A stretch of 64,000 bases of DNA from Anthoceros angustus (taxonomy: Eukaryota > Plantae > Anthocerotophyta). The position numbers and the translations under genes were made by a program. The stretch lies in the NCBI GenBank assembly GCA_010909165.1, contig MU008174.1:1-64000 (forward strand). The letters run 5' to 3'. This document shows positions 5,365-26,720 of the stretch, piece by piece (the first letter of the stretch is position 1; each line of letters starts with the position of its first letter). The notes beneath the pieces were generated by a model, which had not been told where the DNA came from, ran no database searches, and saw only the letters and a program-made list of their open reading frames with translations.

Positions 5365-6010
5365 TACAAGTCCCATGACAGAAAAAAAATCCATCTCATA
5401 TGAATTTGTGTTGAATTCCCTTGGTGCAAGTAATTTAGTCACACCATGATACAAGCTATTAAGTACCAAGTCCCATGACAGGAAAAAATTCTGTCTTACA
5501 TGAATTTGCATTGAATGCCCTTGATGCAAGTAGCTTAGAGACACCATTGTACAAGTTATTAAGTACCAAGTCCTATAACCACACAAAATTCTGTCTTACA
5601 TGAATTTGCGTTTACTTATTTAACATAACACATTTATTATAATTCAGATGACCAATTTTTTCTTTTTCGTCAAGTTGAAAATAAATGCTTCAAATGTCAT
5701 GAAACATCACAGCCTGGGTGCCCTTAGTGCAAGTAGCTTAGACACACCATGATACAAGTAGTTAAATACCAGGTCCCATAACTCAAAAAAAATGAAAATA
5801 AATGTTTCAAATATCATCAAACATCACAAATCGGATGCCCTTGGTGCAAGTAGCTTAGACACACCATGGTACAAGTTGTTAATTACCAGGTCTCATAACG
5901 GAAAAAATTCCACCTTATATGAATTTTGCCTATACTTATTTAATAGGACACATTTATTATAAGTCAAATGATCAGTTTTTTCTTTTCTGTCAAGTTGAAA
6001 ATAAATGCTT
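5365..6010. repeat. Tandem repeat, ~100-bp core units with longer variants
   Basis: Recurrent ccttggtgcaagtagcttagacacaccatgatacaag...taagtaccaagtcccat. Confidence 0.8.
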
Positions 6011-6380
6011 CAAATACCACCAAATATCACAGCCAGCATACGACCTTCAAATCTAACACACGACCGACTTTAGATCAAATGCTTCAAATACCACCAAATA
6101 TCACAACCAGCATAAGACCTTCAAATCTAACACACGACCGACTTTAGATCAAATGCTTCAAATACCACCTTCAAATCTAACATAGGACCGACTTTCAAAT
6201 CAAATGCTTCGAATGCCACCAAACATCACAGCCCGCATGTGACGTGCCCGCATATGACCTTCAAATCTAATATACGACCAACTTTCAGATCTATTGCCAC
6301 CGACTTTCAGATCTAATGCCACCAAATATCACAGCCTGCTTACGACCTTCAAATCTAACACACGACTGACCTTCAAATCT
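6005..6380. repeat. Tandem repeat, ~70-bp unit
   Basis: Recurrent accttcaaatctaacacacgaccgactttagatcaaatgcttcaaataccaccaaatatcacag. Confidence 0.8.
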
Positions 6381-6806
6381 CATGCGGTGAGAGTGGATCG
6401 AACACACACGTTCTTGAGATCCAACAAACGCACGCTTGGATCGAACACACGACCTTCTTATTTCCACTCTGGGTTGAATACCACGTTCGATGAGAGGAGA
6501 ATTCCGTTAAGTGCATTATAATATCTTTCTATAGTCCAGTACCTGCCTTTGTTTCCAGTTTATAACTAGAAATTTGCTTGATATACCTTTGCAATTTTTG
6601 GACGCCGTGACGCTGTGAAGGCAGCAACCTGCGAGGAGTTCTTTGCTTCTGAGCGCTGATCGACCTAGCTGTCGGCTGCGGACTGTGCGGAACATAGGAG
6701 ATGGGATGCGACATGGTGGGCGCCTGCTCTCAGCTTTGCTGCTTGCTTGCTGAAAGCTTGCAGCATGGAGCCCTAGGGTTCGATTGTGGCAGAAGAGCAG
6801 GGCAAA

Positions 6807-8223
6807 ATGGGTGGCGGGCGGGCGGCGTCGCCCGGGCCTAGGCAGCCTGCAAAGCCCAGCAGCCTGCTCCAAGGCGTGGGCAAAAAGGTTCAGGAGAAGC
6901 GCAAGGAGTATGCCAACATGTCGTTGCTGTTGGAAGACCCGCCCAGCGATGAGGTTTTTCTGGCTGCCTTCACCTGGTACACCTGGCACTGCCACAGAGT
7001 GATAGGCTGGAATCTGATGGCTGTCCACAGGAAACCATGGTGCTGCTGCTGGATGTCAGCCGCTCAATGCACCCTTACCTCCAGACTGTCATCGAGGCTC
7101 TATCTTCGCTGGCGCAGATGAAGGTGCTGCTGCTTGTCCTATTACCCTCCTTCCGCCCTCTCTCTCTCTCTCTCTCACGTTCCGTGGCTCTCCTCGATAT
7201 GCTGTGTGCTGTCCCAACTCTCACTTTTAGACGGTGTGGTGTGGTGTGGTTCGTCCCAACTCCTCTCATGCCATGTAGAATACTTCCACTGCAGATGCGT
7301 TTCCACAAGACAGACGACCTGGGTTTGGTGCTGTTTGGGGCCAGCGGTAAGGCAAAGGAAATCCCCCCACTCCTCAGCTGTACACCACTGGAATATCACA
7401 TGCGTATGAGAAAACAATGGTTGTTCGTGGCATATTTTCTAGTACCCGAAAGTGGGAAGGCGTAGTGAGTGTTTGCCTGAGAGAAAGTGGCTGGTGATGA
7501 TGATGCTTCACAGAGACTGGCAACACGCTGAACAAGGAGATGGGAGGATACAACAATGTGGTTGTGTCTCGTCCACTCCTGCTCATCAACCAGGACCTGA
7601 CAGACACACTGGATCAGGTTACTCCGGGCTTCGGTGACAGTGACTGTATCCTTGCGCTCTGTCGTGTCTCTCATCAGGGTCATGCCATGGGACTCATGTA
7701 TGCATGACATCATCAAAGTTTGGCCATCCTTGAGCCTGTGTCCCCAGACGTGAGTGCCCTTGTGGTGGGGATGGACATGATCGTGAGGGAAATGGCACTA
7801 GGAGGCCACGGCAAGAACAAGCGACTGCACCTCATCACGGATGGAGAGACGTCCCTGAGGCCCCCATTCAACAGCACGAGCGAAGCTGAACTCACCAACC
7901 TCTCCAACATCATGAAGCAGCAGGGTGCCACGGTGGACGTGGTGATCCTCAGGATGCCCAAGAAGAGCACTATCAGGAGCCGGGCCAGCGTGGAGAACGA
8001 GCGGCTCCTTCGCAGATTCGCCAAGCGAATGAGGGGAAAGCTGGCAGTGGTAGAAAATGAATCCTCCCTCATGACGGCCTTGCTGCAGAACTGTCACGTG
8101 GCGGGCATCGCATTGGGCGTTCTGGACGCAGAGAAGAAAACCGAGTCGGACACCTTGCAGGAAGTTTCACAACGTGCTGGCGCCTCATCAGCAGGAAGCT
8201 TGACACGGTGGACAGGGAGATAA
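6807..8223 (+). CDS. KU80-like: Ku80-like protein, vWA domain only; exons 6807-6953, 7031-7123, 7295-7346, 7514-7645, 7748-8223
   Basis: Spliced product ETMVLLLDVSRSMH...DDLGLVLFGASETGNTLNKEMGGYNNV...GDSDYVSALVVGMDMI...KRLHLITDG...VENERLL follows the plant Ku80 N-terminal vWA domain; all junctions are GT-AG and keep frame; exon 1 is less certain. Confidence 0.85.
7646..7747 (+). other. U12-type (minor spliceosome) GT-AG intron
   Basis: 5' splice site GTATCCTT; branch-like ATCCTTGAG at 7726-7734 close to the AG; weak polypyrimidine tract; phase 1. Confidence 0.75.
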
Positions 8224-8630: not shown

Positions 8631-10040
8631 TCAGGGCTTGGCCAGCCAAGCCAGGCACATGGCTGCCGTCCAGGAGAAGTAGTTGCCACCAGCTCCAGCT
8701 CCCGTGATTGGGTTGTAGTACTCGTACAAGCCGTGCTGGCTGAGGAGACGGTGCGTGTCATCCTTGATGCGCTGAGCAAACTGGTGGTAGCCATATTGCA
8801 GCAAGCCATCTGCAATCATCCAGTTCACGATGGCCCACACCGGGCCCCGCCAGTACCTGAGCGGCTCGAAGCCGGGGTCGCAGGGGTCCAGGCTGGGCAC
8901 GCCGTATTGGACAGCGTCCAGCCACTGACCCAGAGTCTGCGCCAGCGTGGCCGCCTGCGCCGGGGACACGATGCCGGCGAAGAGCGGGAGGAAGCCGGCC
9001 GAGGTCCTGGCGGGAACCAGGCTGCCGGTGAGCTGGTCCCGGCAGAAGTAGAAGCCCGCCTGGGCGTCGTAAAGGGAGTCGAAGGCTTGGGCAGTGCCTT
9101 CCCGCCATCCCTCGATCTCCCGCACCGCCTCCTGGTCCCCCAGCTGCTGCGCTATCCACAGCAAATCCGCATTGGCCCGGTGAAGGATACAGTTGGTGCA
9201 GAGATCCGTGACCCTGAAGGGGGAGATGGAGTAGAGCCTGGTTAGGTCGTAGTCTGCCTCCCGGAACCTGTACAGGAGCGTGAGGTAGCGGTCGTAGTCC
9301 TCCTTGCTAGGGCGCATGGCGGAGTCGACGTGGCCCAGGTCCTGCCGGACGTAGGGCGGGATGGAGTCCACGGGAACCCGCGCCATAGCCTGATCCCATG
9401 CGGGGCTGTTGTCCATCCCGCTCTCCCACGGGTGGAGCGTGGCCACCAGCCCCGTGCCCTCGGGGTCCCGCGCGCGGTAGAACCATCTGTGCCAGGCCAG
9501 CAGCTTGGGGAAGATTGCGCCAAGCTTGCGCAGGGCCTGGTCCGTGTCCGCCGCATTCTCCGCCAGCTTCCGGACTGAGATGGCGGCAACGGGAGGCTGC
9601 GTGATCCCGGTGCTGGCGCGCGGATGCTCCGCGCTCCCCCAGATGTCGGGCCCCGGGAAGTAGGTCGGGCTGGGACGGTGGAACACAATGTGCGGCACCA
9701 TGCCGTCCTCCCACTGTGCCGAGAGCAGCTTCTCCATCTCCTCCCACGCCCGGGTCTCGTCGATGGAGGCCCAGCCTAGGGCCACCAGGGCCGAGTCCCA
9801 GTTCCACTGGTACGGGTACAGCCCCTTGGCCGGGATCGTGTAGCCCCCGTTGTCGTTCTCCAGCAGGATGGATTTGCACGCCTCCAGCAGCTCCGAGTTG
9901 GAATCCGCGCTCGCCTCCGACGCCTGCTGGTCGCCCGTGGCCCAGACCTCTAGCGCGCACGATCTCAAATCCGGCAGCGAGGCCGCAGAGTTGATGCGCC
10001 CCAGGGGCTGCTCCTGTGGCTGCCTCACAAGCATAGCCAT
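8631..10040 (-). CDS. mgH: Mannosylglycerate/glucosylglycerate hydrolase (GH63, MgH/GgH), intronless CDS
   Basis: LYPYQWNWDS, GMVPHIVF, YFPGPDIW, TGITQPP, HPWESGMDNSPAWD, DYDRYLTLL, YWRGPVW, EYYNPITG..GGNYFSWTAA: signatures of Thermus/Rubrobacter-type MG hydrolases; first ATG at 10040. Confidence 0.93.
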   Translation of the reverse strand: MAMLVRQPQEQPLGRINSAASLPDLRSCALEVWATGDQQASEASADSNSELLEACKSILLENDNGGYTIPAKGLYPYQWNWDSALVALGWASIDETRAWEEMEKLLSAQWEDGMVPHIVFHRPSPTYFPGPDIWGSAEHPRASTGITQPPVAAISVRKLAENAADTDQALRKLGAIFPKLLAWHRWFYRARDPEGTGLVATLHPWESGMDNSPAWDQAMARVPVDSIPPYVRQDLGHVDSAMRPSKEDYDRYLTLLYRFREADYDLTRLYSISPFRVTDLCTNCILHRANADLLWIAQQLGDQEAVREIEGWREGTAQAFDSLYDAQAGFYFCRDQLTGSLVPARTSAGFLPLFAGIVSPAQAATLAQTLGQWLDAVQYGVPSLDPCDPGFEPLRYWRGPVWAIVNWMIADGLLQYGYHQFAQRIKDDTHRLLSQHGLYEYYNPITGAGAGGNYFSWTAAMCLAWLAKP

Positions 10041-12686
10041 TGCGAGCTGCTCACAGTCTGCACAACCGATCGCAAGCACTTGTCAGGTGGCACGCGCAAA
10101 ATCCGATTCTTGCACAGCAAGCAAAGCCTCGAGAAATCCGGCCGAGAACTGTCAAGGAACCTTGACAAACTGTGGCGTACATGGAGAGGTCAAGCAAGAG
10201 CTTTCCAGGAAACAGGAACGTAAAAACTCAAGCAAAAGGAGATCTATGAATCGGAACAAGGACTGCAAATTTACAAGATCTGCGAATGGAACAACACGAA
10301 CTCAGCCAAGAGGGGAAACTTCCTGCTCATTGGAAGCAAGCTGAATTCAGAATACAAACAACAACGATGACCACCACAAAGTCTGCATGATCCGAACAAG
10401 AACTCACCAAATCAAGAAGTCTGGATGCAAACCAGAAGGCACGAAAACAAGAAGAAAGAATCCAAACAACACCTCATCAAAACAAGGAGAGTGAATCAAA
10501 ACCACAACTCGGAACAAGAAGTCGTGCAAACAAAGAACGCCTCGTTCGATACCGAGAACGCATGCAAACAAAGAGGAAATTATGGCGACCTGACGGGAAG
10601 GCGATGAGCTTGCAGTGTGGACGGACAACCAACCGAGTTGCACGATGGTTGCATGGAATGCTGATGTTTTATACTGGCTCAAGCGCTGTCTCCAGTTTAA
10701 GGCCAGCCAGGCAGGGGCATCTACGCGCCTGACTGCCTGCGTGTAAGGGGATTGGGGAATCTATATGGATGGATGAGGTAGGCCAGACCGGACCGGACGA
10801 GGCCGGGCCAGTTGAATTGGTTATCCCTGGGTCACCATAGTCGCTTTGATTGGACTTGCGGCCTGACCTTCCTTCGGTGTTTCCCTTCCGCGCTCTATGT
10901 ACAGGGGAGAGCCGCTGTCCTGCCCTGCTTCCTTCCCTTGCCTTGCCTTGCCTTGCCTTTCTTTCTTCGCGCCCTCCGACACGACGACGGGAAGAAGGGG
11001 CGACAATACTGCTCCCAAAACGGGGGTTTCGCCGGAGGCCAGCCCTCCGGTAGACAAGTGCCACGCAGGATGCGTGGGTGGCGATACCTGGCACGCTGTT
11101 TCCCGCTCCCGGCCGGGCCAATCGCATCTACCCGGATACCGCACAGCGGCTCACGCCACGCTAGCCCAGCCTGGGGGCCTGCTTGCTGTCCACAATCGCA
11201 AAGTTTCAAAACGCCCTCCACGCAAGCTGCTTACCTCCAATAAAACTTGCTATCATCCTTGGCTGTTTCCCTGCGCGGGGTCAACCGCTCTGCCAACCTG
11301 CCAACCGTTTCTCCAGCGCCTTCTGGTTCTGGTTCTGGTTCTGGTTCGCTGTAATCCGTGAGAGGTACACTAGCATGATAAACACAAACAAACAAACAAA
11401 TTTATTTGAAGTCCACTAATAAGGACGGACATGCCGCCCTGGGACTCGGTTCTCCGGGCAACTTGCTCCAAGGGGTAAACTAGGCATTCCTCTCTTGGTA
11501 TCCTATCCGGCTGCCCTTGCGGTGTAGAGTGTTTAACTGCTACACCGTATTTAACTATAACATTAACCTTTTTAAGGATGTATACCATAAACCGGAATAT
11601 CGCAAAGAAGAAGGGAAGGAATCCATATTAAGACTTCCATCCTAATTAGTCCATAATTTATTAAAATTATATATTTTAATAAAAAGAAATATAAAATATC
11701 TTCCAGTTATTCAGATCAATACACTTAACGAAGACTTACTAACTCATAGGAATAACAATCAGGAGTTTAGCGCTTGTCAAAGGTTGCATTAATCAATAAG
11801 AAGTGAGGGAGTGGACAATATTTATGACTTGAGGTTTCTCGCTAAAAAAACACTTGTGACTTGAAGTACGAAATTTGAAACATTTTCTTGCGTACCACAA
11901 CATATTGGTGTATGATATTCACACTACGGAATCACCTTAAGATTGGCATAACCTCTAGGATTATGTTCATGGAATGACTACTCCATTTTCTACTTAAAAA
12001 TATGCGAATCTACTTCTTTATTTTTATTTCTATATAATAAATTCTTGAAAAATAACAATGTGTTCTTTTTGGCAAGGGCTTTTGAATGACACCATTCATG
12101 CTTGCATGGGATAAGTGTGCCACAAGGAAACGCTCCATGTTGTACTTGTAAAATTTTAATGATAAAAAAAAAGAATAGCCACATGCTTGTTTTCGCAAGG
12201 GCTTCCTAGTGACACCATTTATGCTCGATTAGACAAGTGTGCTGCAAGTGTGTTGGTATTCCTTTGAGACTTGGGCTCAATTCTAAGCACAACACATGGG
12301 GTTAAAACATGCGCAAGTGAAAACTTGGACGGATAGCATTAAGTTCTTGGGAACTCCATTATCAAGCACCCGAGAACTACTGGGATGGGGTGCTTATCCC
12401 AAGAATGAAGCTTCTAATAGTCGAGGAACTCTCTAATAAAAGTCTCTCAATTCCAGCCACGAATAAAATGATAACGTTGATACCATGGGTTTGGAAAACG
12501 CAAGAACTCGAGGTAATCCCAGCATGCCAGATAGGAGACGTTATCCTTGGATGCATCACGAACCTCGACATCTGTGTACATGATCGAGTTCAGCAGACGG
12601 CATGATGTATCCATGCAAGGCGATCCAGCTAGCACCAGCTACATTACATACTTCTGCTTGTGTTTTACGGTTGATCGAACGGCGGA

Positions 12687-14000
12687 CAGCTCAACCGTGG
12701 AGAAGAGAAGTTTCATCCGATTTGCGGTCTGGCAAATCCACACAACTAGAAAGGCTACCCGGGATACAATTGTCGGCACATCTGAGTGAAAGAGAGAGAG
12801 AGGAGCAATGGAATCTAGCACATTTCACCTGCCTGCCGACGTATCCATCCATCTATCTAGTTCCGGTCTTATCAGCAACAGTGGTGTGATCGTCATTCAT
12901 GCACCAGCACTGCTCATGACTCCCAAATTCGAGCCAGCTTGTAGACCTGCCACACACCCACCAACACGCATACCATTACCATGACGCCCACTTGCTGCCG
13001 GCCACCACGAAAGATCAGGGCAGGGTAATTAGGGCAGCACCTGGGCGCTCCGGGCAGGGAGGGAGAGTGTGAGGGAGGCACCATCAATACTCACTTAGCT
13101 CATACTCCATTGGCTGTCTGGGACGTTTTGAATGAGGTAGAACCACATCTTGGAGGGTAAGATGCTGGCAAAGTAGTCGAAGACCATCCTGTTTTTCCTG
13201 CTGGGTTCAGTCAGGCCTGGATACTGTGGGAAGAATTAACAATTGACTCAGTTAAGGGTGCCACACATTTGCAAAACTGGAGAAAGTTCTAGTACCTACG
13301 CTCAGCTTGAATGGTTTCAACTCATGATACAAGCTACCCTGAATTCGTGAACTAGGAAGGCCAGGGAGGAAGTACTGTGCATACATCCTCTGCAATTGTG
13401 ACAATGTTCAAGTTGAGCTTGTGCAGCATCTCATTTGCCAGAATCACACACACTAAACGCATCACTATCCACGGATTGATTGCAGTCGCAAACCAAGCAG
13501 CCAACGTAATTCGACCGAAATGGAGCCCCTGCAGAGCAATCTCTTGAATGACATCAGCCTTACTCATTCAACCCCATTTTTGAATTCTGCGAACTCATTG
13601 TGGCTTTTGATACTCTTCCACCCACCTCCCAGATTGCTTCGTTCTACTCGAACAGTGCCTGAGAGCAAATTTCAGCACCTCATTCTGAAAAATGTCACAC
13701 TATATAGATGATGAAAGTAGACCATATCCACTAACCACCTCAAGTTTGATAAGAGAGAGCGGATAACTTCATGTTCACCGTAGTTGAATATGCGGGTGCC
13801 TGCATGTTTGAGTTGCCAGTGGTGCCGCTCTTGTTGAGGTGGATCCCACATACAGGCGTTAGATGTATTGCTCCCAAGGTTTGAATACATTGGTCAAGAT
13901 CAGCTTAGCATCATCGTCCATCTTGCAGCAGTGCAGAAGACATTTTCTCAGAAGGTTCAACGTGCCAATCTGCCAGATATACAGGTCATTACATCTGCTA
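12687..14000 (-). pseudogene. Internally deleted tandem duplicate of SBE3
   Basis: Blocks match 14497-14894, 16266-16822, 16865-17093 and 17896-18080 of the intact gene, in the same order and orientation and including intron sequence; the 5' exons are absent. Confidence 0.85.
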
Positions 14001-14723
14001 CTTAAAACCAGAATGTGCATCCGAAGCCTGAACCTGACTCTGCTATTTCTCCGTCTCTGTTTCACGCTGTGCTAGAACTGTGCGCAGGTATGAAGGATTT
14101 GCTCGTGTGGCGACGAGTCCATAATCTGACCGTCAAACTTGAGGAACTGTATCTGCCCTTCAAGCTTGTGAAAGCCATCGATGTGGTGCTAAGCGGCGTT
14201 GTTACCACCAACTCTGTCCGGGAACTCCACGACGAACATTCCCTCGAGAAGGGATGTTGAGGACCCCATGATCTGGCCTGAGCCATTTTTGGACACACAG
14301 AGAAAGGATTTGTTTTGAAGTCCACTCCACTGAGGACTATGAAAAGTAATCCGGGACAAACATATACTCCTGTGACGTCCGCCGGATCATGGTTGTCAGC
14401 CTCGGCATCCTCGGCGCCACCCTGAATCCACTCTGAACAGTGACGAAGCCGGAGCAGGGAAGGGCAAGGGGAAGAGCTTGAATATTAATCCAAAAACAGC
14501 TCAACCCTGGGAAAAGAAGTTTCTTATGATTTGGGCTCTAGCAAACCCACACAACCACAAAGGCTACCCGGGATACAATTGTCAGTACATGTGAGTGAAA
14601 GAGAGACAGAGAGAGAGCAATGGAATCTAACACCTTTCATCTGCTTTCCGACGTATCTATCCATCTATCTAGTTCCGGTCTTATCAGGAAGAGTGAGGTG
14701 TGTTATTCAAGCACCAGCACTGC

Positions 14724-17700
14724 TCATGACTCCCAAATTCGAGCCAGCTTGTAGACCTGCCACACACCCACCAACACGCATACCATTACCATGACGCCCA
14801 CTTGCTGCCGGCCACCACAAAAGATCAGGGCAGGGTAGATTAGGGCAGCACCTGGGCGCTCCGGGCAGGGAGGGAGAGTGTAAGGGAGGCACCACTGTCG
14901 GCCACCCTGCGTTCACACACCCCCGGATGCCCACATCACTCTATTAGTATTGTGGGACAAGGAAAGTTGCAACAAATAAAAAAAAAAGGTGTGCTTACCT
15001 GTCTGAAGTGCTTCTCAGGCTATCTGCTTTCAGGCGTCCCTGTCCCCCAAACCCCAGGATATCCGTGTCCAGCACCCTCTGCACCACCCACACTTTAGAA
15101 AGCCAGGTCCAAGTGCTTGCAATTACTATATAACCACAGCTTCCGATTTCCACCTACCTCGTACTCGCCGGTTTCTTGCACCCCGATCGTGAGCTTGTCG
15201 TGGGAAGCGCTTGGATGGAAGTTGAAAACAAAGAGCAATTGCCCTCGTGAAAATATGATCACCTGCAGCCACACCTTCATTGTTTGTGACATGCTGGGTG
15301 TGACTTTCTTTCAACGGAGGAAGCACAAAACACAGCATCACCTGCGCGGGATCATCCAGGACGTAAAAGCTAGGTGGTTTGTTAACGAGTATGATCTCCT
15401 TTTCATCTGCTCCCATGAGGGCCTGTTCACGTTGGCGTCACAGTTCAAACAAATTTGGTTATTAATGCACACACAGCTAACGACTAGCAACATAAAGCAC
15501 TCCTCTCTCCATGAAACATTTCCAAGCCTTGACTGGTCCGACAAAGCCTACCTGGTCAAATTTCGCAAGCTGGGCATGGAAAGAACCGCTATCGAGTAAG
15601 AGGTCCCATCGTCTTCGAGCGTACTGAGATGAAAACTCATTCTTTACCCTTGGGAAATCCACCCACTGAACCAAAAGGCAGCCCATCTTTCAAGGGTTAG
15701 AAATACTGCAGACTTGTAGCTGTGGCATTGAGCTTTGAGGAAATTGTACCTCCGTATGTCCGAATTCATTCCCCATGAAGTTCAAGTATGCAGGTCCACC
15801 AAGGCTAAACGTTATCAACTTTATCATCTGCAAACCGAATTTCTGATTATAACGATTGCTCAGCTCAATGGCAGATCAAGTCGCAGCAGCCAATGATAGA
15901 AACAATGACTTCAACTGACAGACTTGCAACCTTATGCAGCGCCACCCCCCTCTCTTCCAATAGAGCTCTGTCTAAGGTTGTCGTTACCGGATTGAGAAGT
16001 GCTTCAGCTATGGGCCTCTTCTCAGATATTGACTTGAAACAATGGCCAACAACGACAATGATGAGTTCCAAAGCCAGAACCATATCATTAGCGATCTGAT
16101 CTTTCAACATCATGTCGGCAAAATTACCTGGACATGATTTTCTGCATATACAAGAGCTTTGCCTCCAGACTGGGAATCGATTAGAGTCTCTACAATCTGA
16201 AATCGCCATATCACGTGCTATTCGTTAATCTACAAAACGTGACAAAGCATTCCAGAGCAGGACTTTCAATACTCACTTGGCTCATACTCCATTCGCTGTC
16301 TGGAACGTTTTCAATGAGGTAGGACCACATCTTGGAGGGTGAGATGCTGGCAAAGTAGTCAAAGCCCAACCCGCCTTTACTGATGGGTTCAGTCAATCCT
16401 GGATACTGTGAGGCCTATGTGAAGTAACAATCGACTTAGTCAAAAGTGCTGCTGCTGCGCACACTTGCAAAACAGGAGAATATTCTACCTACGCTCAGCC
16501 TGAATGGTTTCACCTCATGATACAAGCAATCCTGAATTCGTGAACTAGGAAGAATAGAGAGGAAGGACTGTGCATACATCCTCTGCAATTGTGACAATGT
16601 TCGAGTTGAGCTTGTGCAGCATCTCATTTGCCAGAATCACATACAACAATGCATCTCTATCCACGTATTGATTGCAGTAGCTGCACAACCAGAGAAATGT
16701 GAAAAGGAGCAACCAAGCAGTCTATGTAATTAGACCGAAATGGAGCCCCTGCAGAGCAACCTCTTGAATGACAGCAGCCTTACTCATTCAACCCATTTGT
16801 GAACTCTGTAAACCCATTGTGGGTGTAAAACATGGACTGCAGCGAATGGAAGTGGAATCCATCTATTTGATACTCTTCCACCCACCTGTCATGAGCAACA
16901 AAAGTGTGAATTCCAGGCTACTTCGTTCTAGTTGCACAGTGCCTGAGAGAAAATTCCAGCACAACATTCTGAAAGATATGTCACATCATAGATGATCAAA
17001 GTGGACTAAATCCACTAACCACTTCAGGTTTGATAAGAGATAGCGAAGCACTTCATATTCACCGAAGTTGAATATGCGGGTGCCTGTATGTTTGTGACGC
17101 CCTCTCCGTCCTGCAATGCAATGGTGAACTGAGCTGCTAAAGCGAAAGGGATGGTGAAGGGACAAACAAAAATCCCAGCATTCTGCACCAATCCTTGCAA
17201 TGCAGTGCACACTAACCATCATGGAAGTAGCAATCATTAGCACCATCGAATGAAGAAAGGCCAACCATCTCGTCTGCAGCCGCATATGAATGAACTATGT
17301 CCATGATGACAAACAGACCCATCCCTGTTTACCATGAACTCAATACATGAGAAACGAGCTGACTTGATTTAAACTGGCTTCAGTAGCAAGCTTGCAGGGG
17401 ATGCCTTACGAACCATGGGCACTATCAACCAGGTGTTTGAAATCTTCTGGGGTTCCAAAGCGACTACTAACAGCAAACATATTTGTAACCTGCTCAGTTG
17501 GAAAAATTCTGAACATTAAGTGGGTGCAGAATAATCTCAATCGAATTTTCAAACATTGGGGACATGAAGAGCACAACAGGGCTGTACCTTATAACCAGCA
17601 CTTGCATAGTCTACATGCTCTTGAATTCCCATAAGCTGGATAGCATTGTAACCAGACTTTTTGATATGAGGAAGAACCTATTTTTCATCAAACATAGATT

Positions 17701-19860
17701 CTCAGACTGCAAGCTACACACGACAGACATGTTGAGCAGGGAAAACAAAATAATGCAGGCAACGAGCCACCAGACTCAATCCATACTTGCCTTCGCCGTA
17801 AACTCTTGGAAAGTTGTTACACCAAGTTCTTCTCCACTTATTCCAACATGGCATTCATAAATCCGTAATGGCTGTGGTCTCTTGGGACTCTTGTGCTGCC
17901 AGTGGTGCCGCTCTTGTTGAGGTGGATCCCACATACAGGCGCTAAATGTATTACTCCCAACATCTGAATAGATTGGTTAAGATCAGCTTAGCATCATCGT
18001 CCATCCTGCAGAAGACATTCACATCCTTTGTCTCAGCAGGTTCAACCTGCCAGATATACAGGTCATTACATCTGCTGCTACAGGCATCAGAAGAATTTAT
18101 ATCACAGCACATACCAGTGCCATCAACATCAGAAGAGATCATAAGTCACACAGTACAGCGTGTGGTTGTCCCACTCACCTTGTAACACATATGTGGCCCA
18201 AGCAGGGATTCGCTCCAGAGGCCCTTCAGGCGTTTGAAGAAACAACCTTAGTCTACCCTTATGAGCAAGAGTAGGTATATACTTCTTCTCCCATGCTTTA
18301 CGGCCACTTCGTAGGTATTTCCAATAATTCGGAGGAGGAGTTTTTCGCTCCGCTCGGGCCCGATAAACAGGGTCATCTACACAGGTTGGTTCAACATTTC
18401 TCCCATCATCTATTACATCAATTGGAGGTAACTGCCCCTCAGTGACAGGCTGGCTTGCTCTCCATGCTTCATATCTTGCTCGAGCACTAGGGATGTAGTC
18501 AGGAAAGTCCTCAGAACCATCCTCCTCCTCTGTGTCTGCAGACTCTTCCCGATAAATGGGATTGGGATTGTCTCCAAAAATCTTCCTATGTAGTTCCAGC
18601 CACTTAACCATGGGATCACCCATGTACTCGTCTTCACCAGGCTCCCAATATTGCTTGTCCGCCTCGTCAAAAATTGCATCCCAATCAGGGTTCTCGTCAC
18701 CTAAGTCATGATCCTTGTCGTAACTGTACTCCTTTACTATAAGGTCTGGCTTTTCTCCTTCACGAAGCTTATCTTCAATTACAAGTCTCCAACAGCCATT
18801 ATCATCATGTCCAAGATATCCCTCCCCTGAATACTCTTTACTGGGTTCCCAGTTGTTGAAATCCCCCACAACAGAACAATAACGAGAAGCTGCAAACAAG
18901 ATAGCTGAGGCAATGGCAAGGTACTGGCAAGGCATGCGTCAGAAGCACCAGACATGGACTGGTTCGGGTAGCCACGACTTTTCACAACTGAGGCTTCAGA
19001 ACACTTGCAGGACTGCCTCTACTCCAAGATATCAAGCAGCTCCTACAAGCTTCAGCCACCTCTTAACCCAAAAAAGCAAAGAGGACGAAATTCTACCTGG
19101 AGCCCATTCAATAAGCTCAACAGCATGAAAGGGAGTTCGATGAAGACCCATATCCTCATATCTGCGATGCATACTAGCGGGTCAATCTCCCCTTTCCCAA
19201 CCCTCACCAATGTGGGCCATCAAAGGAGGTACACAAAGCGTCACGTACGCTGAAGCGAAGGTAAGTAGATTGTCATCCTGCTCAGCTATTAGCTTTCTCA
19301 AGTCCTTCAGAGCTTTGTACCTGGACAACAATCGCAGCAGCTCAGCTCAGCTCAGCTCAGCTCAGCTCAGCTCTGGTCTCCGAGAATCGTTTTTCCCTCT
19401 TCATATGCTATCTCTACTTCAAATTCCGAGTCCTAAACCGGTCACACGTTTCACTCAAATCTACTTTCAATTCATGTTCACTAAAATACCATGTCATACA
19501 GAGCTTGAGAGATTAGTACCTTTCGCGCAGATATTGTGGAAAGGCTCTGGAGGTGAGATTCCTGTCCTTAAAAAAACCAACAGGATCCAGGCCCAAGTCA
19601 GTGTCACTGGGAGCCGGGTCTCTTTGCTCAGATGCAATGCCTGTCTTCTTCTCCACTGCAAAACACTTGACACTGTGGCGTCCCTCTGTGGGGAAGCAGT
19701 GAGCTCCAACATGGTATTTCGGAGACACCGCATGTCTAGCACTTGGCCTAACCGCAGGCATCCCGTACATTTTCCCATGTGACCTGAAACCTCCACATTC
19801 AGAAGACGGCCTGGGAAACCACTCGAGCCGAAAGATGGGAAGAGCCCAAGGAACAGCCAT
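14724..19860 (-). CDS. SBE3: Starch branching enzyme class III (SBE3/BE1-type, GH13), multi-exon, predicted plastid transit peptide
   Basis: Exons encode [24 protein letters not shown]|[40 protein letters not shown]...[57 protein letters not shown]|[10 protein letters not shown]; last exon 14724-14756. Confidence 0.92.
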
Positions 19861-21876
19861 CGGAAAACTCGTCTACACAACTCCGTCTATTTTACACGAC
19901 AAGCAAGCTGCTGGCTACAGTTGACGTGCTGAGAGTCAGAGAGAGTATTACACCGGAGTGACGGGAGTGACCTCATGTGCCGGGACGGAACGGAATTGAA
20001 CGGGACGGGACAGAAGGGAAAGGATGTTGCACCGTGCTGGAAGTTGAACGCGATCCTGTAATTTTAAATGTCGAAGGAAGGTCCCTGTTCACACTGTCTA
20101 CTGTTCAGTGTGTACTGGACGGATGAAGGACAGCATATTCAACCTGAGCTCGGCAGGCGCATTCCCGGTCTGGCCCGGGGACCACATTGGCCACCAAAAA
20201 TGCTTGCTTTGCGCGATCTGATCCACTTTAGAGCCTTTCCTGCTCGCCCTGCCCGGCTGGGTGGTGGGTTTCTGCCACTGTTCTCATCGTCTCTGACTGG
20301 TGCCCGGAACATGCGATTTCTGAGCCGCATCTATCGCTTCCTCCCGTTATCTTCGCTCTCAGGCACCGTCTAGGGCTTTCAAACCCTGGACTCAAGGAAC
20401 AATCGTATTTTGAAACGTATGTGGACATGGACCATCAGGCCGGCTTGCTGGCATGTGCTCTCGCTGCTTCTTAGACAATTTCATTCCATGCTGTGCGCAT
20501 TTTGGTGTGGAAAAGTTTGCTTCGTTGTAAGGCGCTGGCGAGTTCTTTCCACAGCTTGTCTCAGGGTCATCTAAATTTGGCACCTTCAGTATTGCTAGCG
20601 GCTATGGCTGAAGCAATGGATCAGGACGTTAAAAGGTTGATGGTTTCTGCTTCAAAAGTGCAGGTGTGAGTAGTATGAAGGGTTGTTTTCAATGGAGTTC
20701 CGACTGTACGAGCTATCACAGTTTGTCAGCAAGATCTGGCAGTGTCAGTTCCGAAGTGGACAGATCAAGTGGCAGATCATTGTCTGTCTTTCTGAAAAGA
20801 AGACGAGCAAAGCGAAGAATCCTCACTTTGGGATGGAAGATTTACTGCCCTTGCTCTAGCTCTCTGGCTCCTAATGGCTATGGTACACGGTTAGTTGTGA
20901 GTACGTTCATGCTAGCCTCAGTTTGCTTCCTAGAGATCAGCTTTTCGTTTGTCCGGTCATTTGTCCACCGTTGTCGATTGTCACTACCCCTTGCCCTGTG
21001 GATCATAGAACTCATCACTGGATGATGGGTTTCTTGCAGTCATGGTCGTTTGTCATAACACTTGGAGCTCCCGGAAGAGAGATAAGCACTGGAGTCCAAC
21101 GTCAGTAATGGTGTGTCTGACTTAAGCACCTCTGTGATGCTGTACTGCTACCAGGACCATGACTGGCCGGGGTCGGATGCTGGCCATGAGCTGCCTTGTT
21201 GACGAGCTCTGTTTGCGAAACAGGCTCTGGCTAGCCACTATGAAGACTGAGAGCACTTGGAGGGCAAACTTCTGTCTTTCAAAATGTTTTCCTCGACAGG
21301 TTTGCCAAATGGCCCTCGCAGTTTGCTCTTGTGTTGTTAGGTATCTATGTTTTTGGCAGCTGATAATGAACGATCGTACTGTTTCCTTTGCTTGCAGGGC
21401 ATGAGTTCCAGGCGCAGACGGAGACCAAGGCATTGCCCTTGGTGGCATTTCTGTTCAGAACAGAGGTATGCAGCTTGTTTCTCAGGTATTGCGTCGTTGC
21501 AGCTACAGCAGTGTGCGTATTGCTTACGAGTGGTTAGTTCTTTTAGGGTGCGTTCCTGCAATGCTGGCAGCACGAGGGAAGTTCAGACTTGGTCAAGGAC
21601 AGGATGGAGCTCGGCTGTTTGTTTGAGAATATTCCCGGCTGCTATTTTAGTTGAATGCAGGAAAGGGAGGTGGAATCTGATTGGCTGAAAGGCGCAAGGG
21701 AGGAAGACTCCTTTTTACTCCTTCTCCATCTTATTTAGGGGAACTCTACGGGCAGGAGAGCACACATAGAAACAGCGGACAGGGAACGCGCGCAACACGC
21801 ACAGCAGCACAGCGGGGCTGATTAGGGCAGAAGAAGCGGAGGATTGCAGGTGGATACACACGGGCGAAAGTAGAGC
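19861..21876. promoter_or_regulatory. Divergent SBE3/mgS intergenic region with a probable spliced mgS 5' leader
   Basis: Head-to-head gene orientation; plus-strand splice-like signals (cag|gtgtga ~20664, cag|gtttgc ~21300, gag|gtatgc ~21466, acceptor ttgcag| 21849). Confidence 0.45.
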
Positions 21877-23166
21877 ATGTCTCTGGTGTGCTTCCCTTTC
21901 AAGGAGGAAGATGTGTCTGTGGTCGTGCGGAACATAGAGCTTGCCGCATCGCACTCAAGGGTTGCTGGAGTCTTGTGCGTGGGGTTCGGACAAGGAGCAA
22001 CATGGAACGCTGTTGCCTCCAACAAGCCAGCAATTGAGAAGTCCACCGGCAAGCGGATTGTCGTCATCCAGCAGAAGCGCTTGGGGGTTTCCCACAGAGG
22101 AGGCAAAGGAGATGGCATGAACACAGCCCTTGCTTTTTTCTTGGAGCATGCTGAATACTCGCGCCTTCATTTCTACGATGCCGACATCGTTTCCTTCTCC
22201 GGGGACTGGATCACCAAGGCTGAGAAGCAGGCAGATCTTGGCTACGACGTGGTTCGCCACTTTTTCCCTAGGTCCAGCACGGATGCCATGATCACATGGT
22301 TCGTCACTAAAGTCGGCTTTGCTCTCCTGTGGCCAAATTCCATTCTTCCCAGCGTGGAGCAACCCCTTGGAGGTGAATTGCTGCTGTCAAGGAAAGCTGC
22401 TGAAGTTCTCTACAACGACTTACGGGTGCGTTCCCAGAGTGACTGGGGAATCGACACGCTCTACACTTTTGCTATTGCCCAGGCGGGGTTAAGCCTGTTT
22501 GAGGTCTACATTCCTGAAGGGAAGGTGCACGCCCTTTACGGTGACCTTAGAGATTTGAGGACCATGCTTGTCGAATGCTTTTCGGCCATACAGTCCCTCA
22601 GGGCAGAGACTCTGGTGAGTAGTGTGGGTGTGCACCGCATGGAGTATCCTAAGCCTGTTCCGGAGCTGGTGAAGCAGAAGATTGGGTATGACGTTGAAAA
22701 GACTCTTCAACTCCTCAAGAGCAACTGGTCTCCCCGCCAAGCTGAGCTTCTGCAGCATCATTTTGATTCAGCGTTGGTGAAGGGCTTGTTGCATGCCAGG
22801 GAGTGGCCCTGCTGGACTTTCGCCGATGAGGACGCCTGGGTTGCGGCCTACTCTGTCTTCTTGGACAAATTTGAGATGGGCGATTATGACTGGGAGGAGT
22901 TGCTTTTCAAGGTGTGGGTGGCACGTGTTCTCAATCACACTCTGCGCCATGTGCTGCGAGGATATGACACTGCCCTTGGAACTCTGAGGGAGTTTGTGGC
23001 TGATGTTCAGCACCAGGCAGCTTTGCGAGCACGGGCTGCCAGCGTAGCGACCAGTCATCCTATCATGTCTGGTCACACGGCTGCTGAAGGCCTTGCTAAT
23101 GGGAAGCTGCCCAGAAGGAAGCAACCATGGAATAATCCGGAATCCCTGTGCTCAGTGCCGGTCTAG
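21877..23166 (+). CDS. mgS: Mannosylglycerate synthase (GT78, MgS), intronless CDS, 429 aa
   Basis: MSLVCFPFKEE, GKGDGMNTAL, HFYDADI, FPRSSTDAMITW, QPLGGELL, SDWGIDTLYTF, EGKVHALYG, DWEELLFKVW: collinear with Rhodothermus-type MgS; in-frame TAG 6 nt upstream fixes the start. Confidence 0.95.
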   Translation: MSLVCFPFKEEDVSVVVRNIELAASHSRVAGVLCVGFGQGATWNAVASNKPAIEKSTGKRIVVIQQKRLGVSHRGGKGDGMNTALAFFLEHAEYSRLHFYDADIVSFSGDWITKAEKQADLGYDVVRHFFPRSSTDAMITWFVTKVGFALLWPNSILPSVEQPLGGELLLSRKAAEVLYNDLRVRSQSDWGIDTLYTFAIAQAGLSLFEVYIPEGKVHALYGDLRDLRTMLVECFSAIQSLRAETLVSSVGVHRMEYPKPVPELVKQKIGYDVEKTLQLLKSNWSPRQAELLQHHFDSALVKGLLHAREWPCWTFADEDAWVAAYSVFLDKFEMGDYDWEELLFKVWVARVLNHTLRHVLRGYDTALGTLREFVADVQHQAALRARAASVATSHPIMSGHTAAEGLANGKLPRRKQPWNNPESLCSVPV

Positions 23167-24309: not shown

Positions 24310-26720
24310 AGTATTGATCTTCATGAATATTGTTCTGTCACGAGGTGTAGGCCAAGATGCGGGTGCAGCTGCCATGGGTCGCATTCTTGGGGTTAGCAGA
24401 CGAGTTGTAGCACGGCATGTTCAAGCTCATCACGAAATACACAGGGCTGAGGAGGATGTGAGATGGTGTGGGGGAGGACGGAAGGTGAGCGCAGTCGTTG
24501 GCGCTTGATGAAGGGGTGTTGAACAATTTTGGGAGCAATCATCACGTCCTTCTTGAACTCTAAGACGCAGCAACGTGTGGCGCCATTTGTGTTTCGCAAG
24601 CACATCATCCATTTCCTCGATACCTCACAGGTGACCGCTTGTTCTGTTTTCCATTGCTGGACACCATAGCCTGGTATGTAGAGTGTCTACCGCTTGTTGC
24701 TGGGGGATGGTCTTTAGGGTCTATTGTCTAGATGCCTTGTGCAAATTTTTGACTCAGGTGTCACTTGGGGTGAGCGGACTCCTGCCACCTTGTGCCTCAG
24801 GCTATATATGTTGTGCTCGTGTTGTCGCGGGCTCTGTGCTTGATTACACTTTGCTTGTAAAGTTTGTCACTTCATGCGGTGGAATGGCAGACTTTGTGGC
24901 TGCCTAGACCACATGCCCCGATCCAGGCTGCAGTTCAAGTGTCAATGGTGCACCTGCATGTGCCTTGCTTGTATATGCTCTCCCACAGACTGATGAGCGA
25001 TGGTTGTTGCTGACGCAGATGGAGTTCTTCCTCCGATTTAATAAGGAGCATCCTGAGATCAAGATAGCCCAGCGCGTGTTCGAGAGGTTGAAACCCTTTT
25101 ACATCAAATCCCTGCAGGAGCGCAATGTATGTTGCTGCAGGTATCACGTTGAAATGGCATTTCTAAAGGATGCGCTCAACCAACTGCGGGGTGTCCAGTC
25201 AAAGGTTCACCCAAGGTCTGCATGCTTGTGTGCCTGTGTTGTCTGCGGAGGTGAGAACGCTTCACAAGACCAGTGTGCAGCAGGGCGTAGTTGCTTTGGC
25301 TCAGTGCGGGAAATGGTGCATAGTGTATTGTGCCCTAAAGCACCAGACGACGACTTCCATAAGCGGAAGTGTTTAATGGGGAACTATAACTTGTGCGGAG
25401 TTCAAAAGCTTCAGTTCTGCCTGAAAGAGGTTAATGCAACCTTGTTGCCTACTGCAGCATTGAAGTGGCGTTGTTTTGAATACCAAAACGTCGGGCAAAA
25501 TGAAGACGGCACTTCCAAGTCCCGAATCAAGCTTATATACAGGGAAACTCACTCATATGAAATGGTAGAGTTTCTCAAAGGGAAGTTGAAACATTTCATC
25601 ACTCATGATTTCGTTCAGAGATGGCAAGCTTTGGAGTTCCGCAAGTGTTTGGAGTGGTTTCCAGAGGATGTCATTGTGTCACCATTGATTTTTCACAAAA
25701 CTATGCTTTCCAAGTGCGTAACGAGATCCAAAGCATGCATTGGCATAATGATCAGTTACCATTCTTGTCCATTTCTTACATGAGGATCGTCCAATTGTGG
25801 AGGAGGACCCATTTTGCAATGTTCAAAAGTTCTACATCATTTTACATTAGCGATGATGACACACTATTTGTCCAACATTGTCTCATGGTTCACTGGAATG
25901 GTTGAGAAGCTATACTAGACCACGGAGCACCGGATGTGGAGTGATGGGGCCGCATCCCGCTCAAGGCTTGCGTTGTTATTTTGTGGCCGACACCGCCTAA
26001 TCAAGGGTGCAACATGTTGTGGAGTTATTTTGGATCGTCATGGAAGGGAGAACATGATGGTGCAGAGCCATACTAAAGAGAGCATCAAGCCAAGAATTGT
26101 CTCCGCCTCGTGAGGTTGGCCGATGTGGTGGATTTTCTACCGCTGTCTCTAACGGGCAACATCTTCGACACCGCACATGTGCAAGCGAATTTTTGGCTTG
26201 TTGAAAAACCGAGGTAAACCAAGATGAGGTGGGGTGTGCGATACCAGTTCCAAAAGCATGCACTCCATTTATGGGTATTCTCGGATGCTTTGAATCCAGA
26301 CTCAAAATGCGACACTTTGCTTTGGTGCTTGCATGGAGTGACCATGCGAGACAAAGGCTCGCTGGAATTTGGCAATGTGACCTTGAAGCTGATTGGTGAT
26401 GTGTAGAATTGCAACGCAGGTGGAACCTTGTCGATTCGAACATCGCGAGGCGGTGAACTAGCCAGAGGAAGCCACAGAGGATGTCACCGAGATGGCCGAG
26501 CTTTTGGAGGAGGCGATAACTTTGTTGTGCTGCAGACACAAAGGATGAAGGGTCAACCTTCTACTTGGTCAAGTGCATCGAGTCTTGTCACAAAACAGAT
26601 GTGCTTAGAATGTATTCCTGGAGCAATTATACTTTCCTTCTAGGTGATGAAATAGTAGTAGGCCAAGATACTGGGGCTTGGTTGAGCCGGATCTCTTTAC
26701 ACACTAGACCTTAATGAGGC
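24310..26720 (+). mobile_element. Degenerate Sola-like (Sola2-type motifs) DDD transposase with an intron (24631-25018)
   Basis: ...HFLDTSQ|MEFFLRF...LKPFYIK, CCCRYH, IDFSQNYAFQVRNEIQSMHW, YISDD, WSDGAAS, HG.GEHDGA motifs across frameshifts. Confidence 0.65.

Follow-up and report, generated by a model that had tools for sequence, protein, structure and literature searches.

Seed-free plants keep enzymes both for making and for breaking down the stress sugar mannosylglycerate (MG), and in the genome of the hornwort Anthoceros angustus the two genes lie close together. The stretch analysed here, called the window throughout, comprises 64,000 nt (positions 1 to 64,000 of contig MU008174.1, GenBank assembly GCA_010909165.1). 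It carries an intact gene for a hydrolase of MG and glucosylglycerate (GG), mgH, on the minus strand and an intact gene for MG synthase, mgS, on the plus strand, both with full-length open reading frames (ORFs) and about 12 kb apart, the distance from ATG to ATG being 11,837 nt. In Selaginella, MgS forms MG and GG from D-glycerate and an NDP-sugar, and the two products are in turn cleaved by MgH (PMC5381378). The enzymes are known ones; their adjacency looks like a lineage-specific trait and not like an ancient, co-transferred cluster.

An intact synthase and an intact hydrolase gene

The mechanical ORF list places a frame of 429 codons at 21877-23166 (+), whose product covers both domains of the GT78 synthases from end to end (PF21969, MGS_GT, 1-239 of 239, E = 6e-136; PF21967, MGS_C, 1-110 of 110, E = 8e-53). 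Its closest relative in the Protein Data Bank (PDB) is Rhodothermus MgS (2bo4, E = 2.5e-138), and it is 70% identical to the characterised Selaginella MGS. In the 2bo4 alignment, D101 and D103 of the DxD motif, as well as K77, R132, T140, E167, W190, D193, H218 and Y221, are identical to those of R. marinus MgS; the DxD motif and the other aligned residues we take to act in donor and glycerate binding. The protein has no N-terminal extension and is, for this reason, probably cytosolic, as far as can be read from its sequence. Both genes appear to be transcribed: in run X1 of the same species and run X15 of a close relative, which clean intron skips lead us to presume to be RNA, an intron upstream of the mgH coding region is skipped, and 98% of the sampled words of mgS are present in X1.

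For mgH, the mechanical list gives 482 codons at 10079-8631 (-). The GTG at 10079 was ruled out as the start, since it falls inside the 532-nt intron at 10058-10589; beyond the last stop in this frame, exon 1 offers no ATG to open it and is therefore 5' untranslated region (UTR), so that the coding sequence (CDS) begins at ATG 10040. The product matches the MGH1-like glycoside hydrolase domain over its full length (PF22422, model positions 1-356 of 356, 389 bits, E = 3e-116) and scores 397 bits against the NCBIfam equivalog for actinobacterial glucosylglycerate hydrolase (GgH), under the cut-off of 550. Thermus MgH (2z07, E = 7e-142) is its closest relative in the PDB, and identity to the characterised Selaginella MGH1 is 68%. 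When aligned with M. hassiacum GgH (MhGgH), for which an active-site residue list is available (PMC6608630), D210 and E440 match the catalytic acid and base, and Y75, W79, W81, D82, Y127, Q148, G208, R243, Y249, Y396 and W397 match their active-site counterparts. The N-terminal extension of ~55 aa, by which it differs from the bacterial enzymes, is acidic, and MgH is accordingly judged, by reading the sequence rather than by a predictor, to be probably cytosolic. Exon 1 also contains three upstream ATGs (10838, 10720 and 10654); the ORF that starts at 10654 is out of frame, reaches the end of the exon and is a possible candidate for translational control.

The sequence-only reading of this locus had described two intact genes with intronless coding sequences about 12 kb apart, with SBE3 and its dead duplicate as the recognisable genes between them, in surroundings dense in transposable elements (TEs). 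This description stands. The domains are complete, SBE3 and the duplicate could both be mapped, and the TE-rich setting finds support in Copia-type fragments, of reverse transcriptase (RT) and Pol, at 46-50 kb and 61-64 kb. Intronlessness holds for both coding sequences but not for the mgH gene as a whole, which has the one 5' UTR intron. Likewise supported are the identities and intactness of the genes and the further proposal that the pair would be able in principle to make and hydrolyse MG and GG.

Linkage of mgS and mgH in other streptophytes

In 12 other streptophyte genomes, the located copies of mgS and mgH lie on different records or 5 Mb apart, where record length served as a proxy in some genomes, several assemblies are at scaffold level and the mgH paralogues were only partly located. 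Physcomitrium has mgS on a 17.01-Mb record and mgH copies on records of 19.53, 20.70 and 17.58 Mb; in Ceratodon mgS is on chromosome 7 and mgH on chromosomes 6 and 2, and in Diphasiastrum mgS is on chromosome 4 and mgH on chromosome 22 and unplaced contigs. Marchantia polymorpha carries mgS as 3g15460 and mgH copies on scaffolds 46, 120 (chromosome 4) and 168. Separate contigs, scaffolds or records were also seen in M. paleacea, Selaginella, Riccia fluitans, R. sorocarpa and Closterium, as well as in Spirogloea (mgS on s36 and s19, mgH on s3 and s56) and Mesotaenium (279 versus 79). In Sphagnum fallax, mgS and an mgH of clade A (defined below) are both on chromosome 13, 5.0 Mb and ~280 genes apart, and in S. 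jensenii the two are on one record; as there are several mgH paralogues, a shared Sphagnum chromosome is unremarkable. The ten-kb flanks of five plant mgS and three plant mgH loci contained neither the partner gene nor SBE3.

A hornwort-like contig, L006, is informative for the SBE3-mgS side only, as it ends inside SBE3. Its large SBE3 exon is 69% identical to that of the window, compared with 36-48% for alga, fern and seed plants, and its SBE3 intron positions match those of the window over the exons present, which argues that L006 probably comes from another hornwort. There, SBE3 is preceded on its 5' side, over 6.4 kb, by CCDC53 and an acyl-ACP thioesterase gene and not by mgS. In Klebsormidium, mgS adjoins a VanY (PF02557) gene (L005, 10001-19452), and Closterium gene model P0021 fuses MgS and VanY, which suggests an mgS-vanY neighbourhood conserved in streptophyte algae.

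Separate histories of the two genes

The streptophyte MgS proteins form one clade (support 100/100); this clade and red algal MgS group together to the exclusion of every bacterial sequence sampled (100/100), and the same pattern was obtained under a mixture model with 123 rows. A grouping of streptophyte MgS with Acetothermia is rejected by the approximately unbiased (AU) test (p = 0.0003); monophyly of red algal MgS is not (p = 0.30), so that their paraphyly is not significant. Red-to-green transfer and shared ancestry would both be compatible with this tree. In the MgH tree the streptophytes fall into clade A (88/88) and clade B (100/100), the two together having a support of 88/88. Closterium and land plants are represented in both clades, which adjoin prokaryotic sequences whose named members are Alphaproteobacteria. 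The MgH of the window is sister to Selaginella MGH (93/87) within clade A, whose support is moderate. Mosses, Marchantia and Closterium have both MgH clades (P0121-P0149), of which only clade A, through Selaginella, has been characterised.

The window MgS forms its own branch within the streptophytes and the window MgH falls among land-plant sequences, no database protein being more than 73% identical to either, all of which fits a hornwort source. The trees indicate that mgS and mgH both predate the split between land plants and Zygnematophyceae, and that their histories are separate. The named proteins among the top 120 matches to MgS or MgH include none from ferns or seed plants, as would be expected had euphyllophytes lost the genes. 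No red algal MgH is named among the top 120 matches, by which absence is not proven; hornwort MgS and MgH are likewise missing from the homologue lists, and this is not evidence of absence. Look-ups for exact copies of the window MgS, the window MgH and Selaginella MGH1 gave no entry. Earlier papers already list plant GT78 proteins from Selaginella, Physcomitrium and Coleochaete, and GT78 from a red alga (PMC3342304; PMC1079823); hornworts can now be added to the lineages with both mgS and mgH, and mgH can be assigned two ancient paralogue clades.

In prokaryotes, 147 mgS loci (1.76 Mb in total) contained no clear MgH homologue, the one weak match being of 139 aa (E = 2e-7) and 10 kb away, and a profile hidden Markov model (HMM) of MgH found no match in 79 prokaryotic genome mgS loci. 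The common neighbours of mgS there are sugar ABC transporters, ManC, HAD phosphatase and MpgS. An intronless mgS CDS is common to Selaginella, Physcomitrium, Sphagnum and Marchantia (Klebsormidium mgS has introns), and the clade-A mgH CDS is intronless in Marchantia and Closterium; intronlessness is therefore no sign of recent transfer and was rejected as such a signal. Recent transfer or contamination was itself rejected, because both proteins nest among streptophytes, the mgH UTR intron is spliced, and the high GC content at third codon positions of mgH (0.87) has parallels in Marchantia (0.90) and Closterium (0.77).

SBE3, its decayed duplicate and the continuity of the assembly

SBE3 was mapped by tblastn with the Arabidopsis, Amborella, wheat and Spirogloea proteins together with per-exon phase arithmetic. 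The matching segments are collinear across the whole protein, every junction is GT/GC-AG with compatible phases, and there are no internal stops; the summed exon lengths predict positions 1504 and 2078 of an RNA contig exactly, and the RNA contig tracks the gene from exon 5 to the 3' end. Exon 4, which encodes the N-terminal insertion, matches only 36 cluster representatives, the named ones being SBE3 or its algal and fern equivalents. The N-terminus is transit-like, again as read from the sequence and not by a predictor. At the position of the GH13 nucleophile Asp, in alignment with human GBE, SBE3 has His, as do wheat and Amborella SBE3, and substituted catalytic residues are a trait of the SBE3 class (PMC8529802). 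Since it has no GH13 nucleophile, and a different 5' neighbour in the related genome, SBE3 is probably a bystander in this neighbourhood. In intron 4 (-), the X1 RNA contig takes 18005 as its acceptor, 42 nt before the site that homology supports (17963), and this choice adds stops in every frame; the RNA contig of the relative agrees with 17963. The acceptor at 18005 may reflect an unproductive isoform retained by the assembler, or reduced SBE3 function in A. angustus.

The partial duplicate retains parts of exons 5, 9-12, 20 and 21 and of the 3' UTR. It has lost the 5' end (exons 1-4) and two internal blocks (exons 6-8 and 13-19), and it contains small indels. DNA contigs run across its internal junction near 13083 both in the same species (13032-13403) and in the relative (12843-13359); the duplicate is therefore real and older than the split of the two species, and misassembly as its source was ruled out.

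For read support, contigs of four runs were compared with positions 9350-15300, the DNA-read comparison thus ending before 15300-21500. Same-species short-read DNA contigs extend over 9723-10924 and, apart from short gaps, over 12386-15300. The stretch 10925-12385 includes multicopy pieces at ~11385-11485 and 12376-12432 and is crossed by none of the short-read contigs listed; such a hole by itself proves nothing. The assembly differs from the short-read contigs by small indels, and the window has no N. Sequence of all four elements (mgH, SBE3, the dead duplicate and mgS) is present in a close relative, organism B, as well, so that the neighbourhood may predate the split of the two species.

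Other features of the window

Besides SBE3 and its duplicate, no further gene was recognised between mgH and mgS, although the interval between the SBE3 and mgS start codons has unassigned exon-like signals. This interval holds both presumed promoters and probably also putative mgS 5' UTR exons. At 20370-21850 (+) there are several exon-like segments with splice signals, as well as a short ATG-started frame at ~20605-20664, for which no homology was found; they are probably mgS 5' UTR exons or a separate small transcript. Compared with L006 and with the regions that precede mgS in other plants, the interval showed no conserved match, and neither a CCDC53 remnant nor a conserved upstream ORF was found between SBE3 and mgS.

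Outside the gene pair, a multi-exon gene at 6786-8220 (+), convergent with mgH, encodes a von Willebrand A-type (vWA) domain (Pfam VWA_2, E = 0.009, below the cut-off; Atlas VWA 0.91) and seems to end after it. The domain recalls the N-terminal domain of Ku80; no PDB match was found. A tandem family of 74-nt repeats lies upstream of this gene, at 6003-6385. Downstream of mgS, a Cys-rich ORF of 272 codons (24965-25783, +) has no Pfam match above the cut-off and resembles a transposon fragment.

Table 1. Coordinates of the mgH-SBE3-mgS neighbourhood in the window
Feature	Position	Strand	Basis
mgH CDS, GH63 mannosyl/glucosylglycerate hydrolase, 469 aa, clade A	8631..10040	-	PF22422, residues, tree
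mgH 5' UTR intron, 532 nt, canonical GT-AG	10058..10589	-	Skipped in probable-RNA contigs X1, X15
mgH exon 1, non-coding	10590 to at least 10878	-	X1 contig and frame analysis
Intergenic stretch with multicopy pieces, join from assembly alone	10925..12385		Short-read contig comparison
SBE3 dead partial tandem duplicate	~12686..14002	-	Self-BLAST 76-91%, exon map
SBE3 3' UTR	14330..14723	-	X1 RNA contig record 3 ends at 14330
SBE3, class 3 branching-enzyme-like (BE1 type), 21 exons, 928 aa	14724..19860	-	tblastn, exon phases, RNA joints
SBE3-mgS head-to-head interval between start codons, 2.0 kb	19861..21876		Sequence
mgS CDS, GT78 mannosylglycerate synthase, 429 aa, intronless	21877..23166	+	PF21969, PF21967, residues

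How the two genes may have become neighbours

The explanation that we favour, and consider rather probable, is that two old, vertically inherited genes were brought close by lineage-specific rearrangement, their closeness bearing no sign of selection and SBE3 being an unrelated neighbour. This chance origin of the adjacency, like enzyme activity, location and physiological role, is what we infer, and several points weigh against this explanation. With a genome assumed to be ~120 Mb, the chance of the named pair falling within 12 kb is 2-4e-4 per genome, and roughly 0.5% over the ~13 genomes looked at; the more distant hornwort evidence comes from L006, a single contig of unverified species that covers the SBE3-mgS side only; and the mgH paralogues are incompletely located across the compared genomes. 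Given the very many related pairs in a genome, one such functional pairing would be expected somewhere. The low chance for the named pair also speaks for a young selected cluster of two genes, in which mgS and mgH would have been brought together in the hornwort lineage, by relocation as in the formation of other plant metabolic clusters, and kept for co-regulated synthesis and breakdown of MG and GG, and so do the intactness and apparent transcription of both genes and the presence of all four elements in organism B. Yet the two are not direct neighbours, being separated by a 5-kb gene and a pseudogene; for a synthase and a hydrolase, opposite regulation would be more likely; the pathway has no toxic intermediate to guard; all other plants do without the linkage; and the evidence from organism B is one of sequence presence only. 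We therefore hold selection of a young cluster to be unlikely, though deserving of serious thought. It is slightly less likely still that a make-and-break cluster was selected and co-regulated and that hornworts are the group in which the long-sought plant MG or GG accumulates.

An older linkage, dating from an early streptophyte or land plant and retained only in hornworts, could account for the shared chromosome or record in the two Sphagnum species, but the distance in S. fallax, the lack of linkage in zygnematophytes, liverworts, other mosses and lycophytes, and the VanY neighbour that Klebsormidium and Closterium mgS have instead make it quite improbable. The proposal of the sequence-only reading that the pair is a co-inherited module found no support, as the genes are unlinked in the 12 other streptophyte genomes; synteny, which it had suggested as a check, showed mgS-mgH linkage in no other streptophyte located, and the SBE3 of L006 adjoins CCDC53. 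A marginally smaller probability than that of ancestral linkage is given to an artefact, namely a false join within the repeat-containing 10925-12385 that would set mgH beside the SBE3-mgS block: this stretch is unbridged and includes multicopy pieces, small indels occur, and the DNA-read comparison stops at 15300. Against a false join, the window has no N, unitigs normally end at short repeats, SBE3 can be traced in the RNA contig from exon 5 to the 3' end, and DNA of two species confirms the duplicate, which is the part most open to suspicion. Hardly any weight can be given to the idea that mgS and mgH came from one bacterium as an operon-like unit and stayed together, although both families are mostly prokaryotic, both CDSs in the window are intronless, and in Thermus thermophilus HB27 mgH lies beside mpgS and mpgP, the genes for two-step MG synthesis. 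An operon would be expected to show adjacency in candidate donors and a single donor lineage. Instead, the 147 prokaryotic mgS loci have no clear mgH beside them, MgS groups with red algae, the named top bacterial matches differ between the two genes (Alphaproteobacteria for MgH), and both genes are older than the land plant-Zygnematophyceae split. The gene trees with bacterial and red algal homologues, also suggested as a check, thus gave differing histories, and operon co-transfer appears largely refuted.

Rearrangement of two old genes leaves room for a function of the pair. Each enzyme would work as its orthologues do: MgS, probably in the cytosol, would transfer mannose from GDP-mannose, or glucose from NDP-glucose, to D-glycerate, and MgH would split MG or GG into hexose and glycerate by an inverting mechanism, with D210 as acid and E440 as base. 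Together they could sustain the regulated synthesis and breakdown of a compatible solute or glycerate store, for which no physical linkage would be required. Photorespiratory glycerate, which crosses the cytosol, is a possible MgS acceptor, this being plausible chemistry. Our literature search yielded no paper that deals with hornwort MG genes or with mgS-mgH linkage, and an arrangement linking MG synthase and hydrolase was found described for no plant. The intact, apparently transcribed pair makes Anthoceros a practical system in which to seek the solute and knock out the genes; should the linkage prove to be shared among hornworts and the genes to be co-regulated, clustering of this kind would be unusual for primary stress metabolism.

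Comparison with known systems

Biosynthetic clusters and pairs are well known in plants, including those for avenacin, thalianol and momilactone as well as TPS-CYP pairs, and a cluster is usually defined as at least three non-homologous genes of one pathway side by side. The Anthoceros locus resembles them in that genes of a single pathway, not homologous to one another, sit near each other amid TE-rich DNA. It differs in that its two pathway genes are opposing ones with an unrelated gene between them, and concern a compatible solute rather than a defence compound. There are two pathway genes here and not three, SBE3 having neither the nucleophile nor a shown link, and the linkage is not kept across relatives, being absent from the 12 streptophyte genomes, with the SBE3-mgS adjacency absent from L006. 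SBE3 itself has in common with Arabidopsis BE1 (At3g20440; PMC8529802) a large exon for the N-terminal insertion, an N-terminus that resembles a plastid transit peptide, and substitutions of catalytic residues; unlike BE1, it is followed by a decayed partial duplicate, and it has no known link to MG metabolism.

The closest characterised enzymes are those of Selaginella, whose characterisation is cited in PMC5381378 and PMC6608630. The window proteins share with them, at the identities given above, the domains, the active-site residues and the intronless mgS CDS; in Selaginella, unlike here, mgS and mgH lie on different scaffolds and the mgS neighbours are unrelated. The S. moellendorffii enzymes, MgS (GT78, D8S5L4) and MgH (GH63, MGH1 D8QTR2 and MGH2 D8T3S4), were reportedly characterised by Nobre et al. 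(2013, Planta 237:891). MG and GG are said to have gone undetected in Selaginella extracts, so that the in vivo product is unproven there too. Among bacterial enzymes, R. marinus MgS (2bo4), T. thermophilus MgH (2z07/4wva) and M. hassiacum GgH (PMC6608630) belong to the same families as the window proteins and share their catalytic residues, with one-step synthesis from NDP-sugar and glycerate and inverting hydrolysis. The bacterial mgS loci differ in having no neighbouring mgH, and the plant MgH differs from the bacterial one in its N-terminal extension and 5' UTR intron, while the plant MgS is nearer to the red algal enzymes than to any sampled bacterial one.

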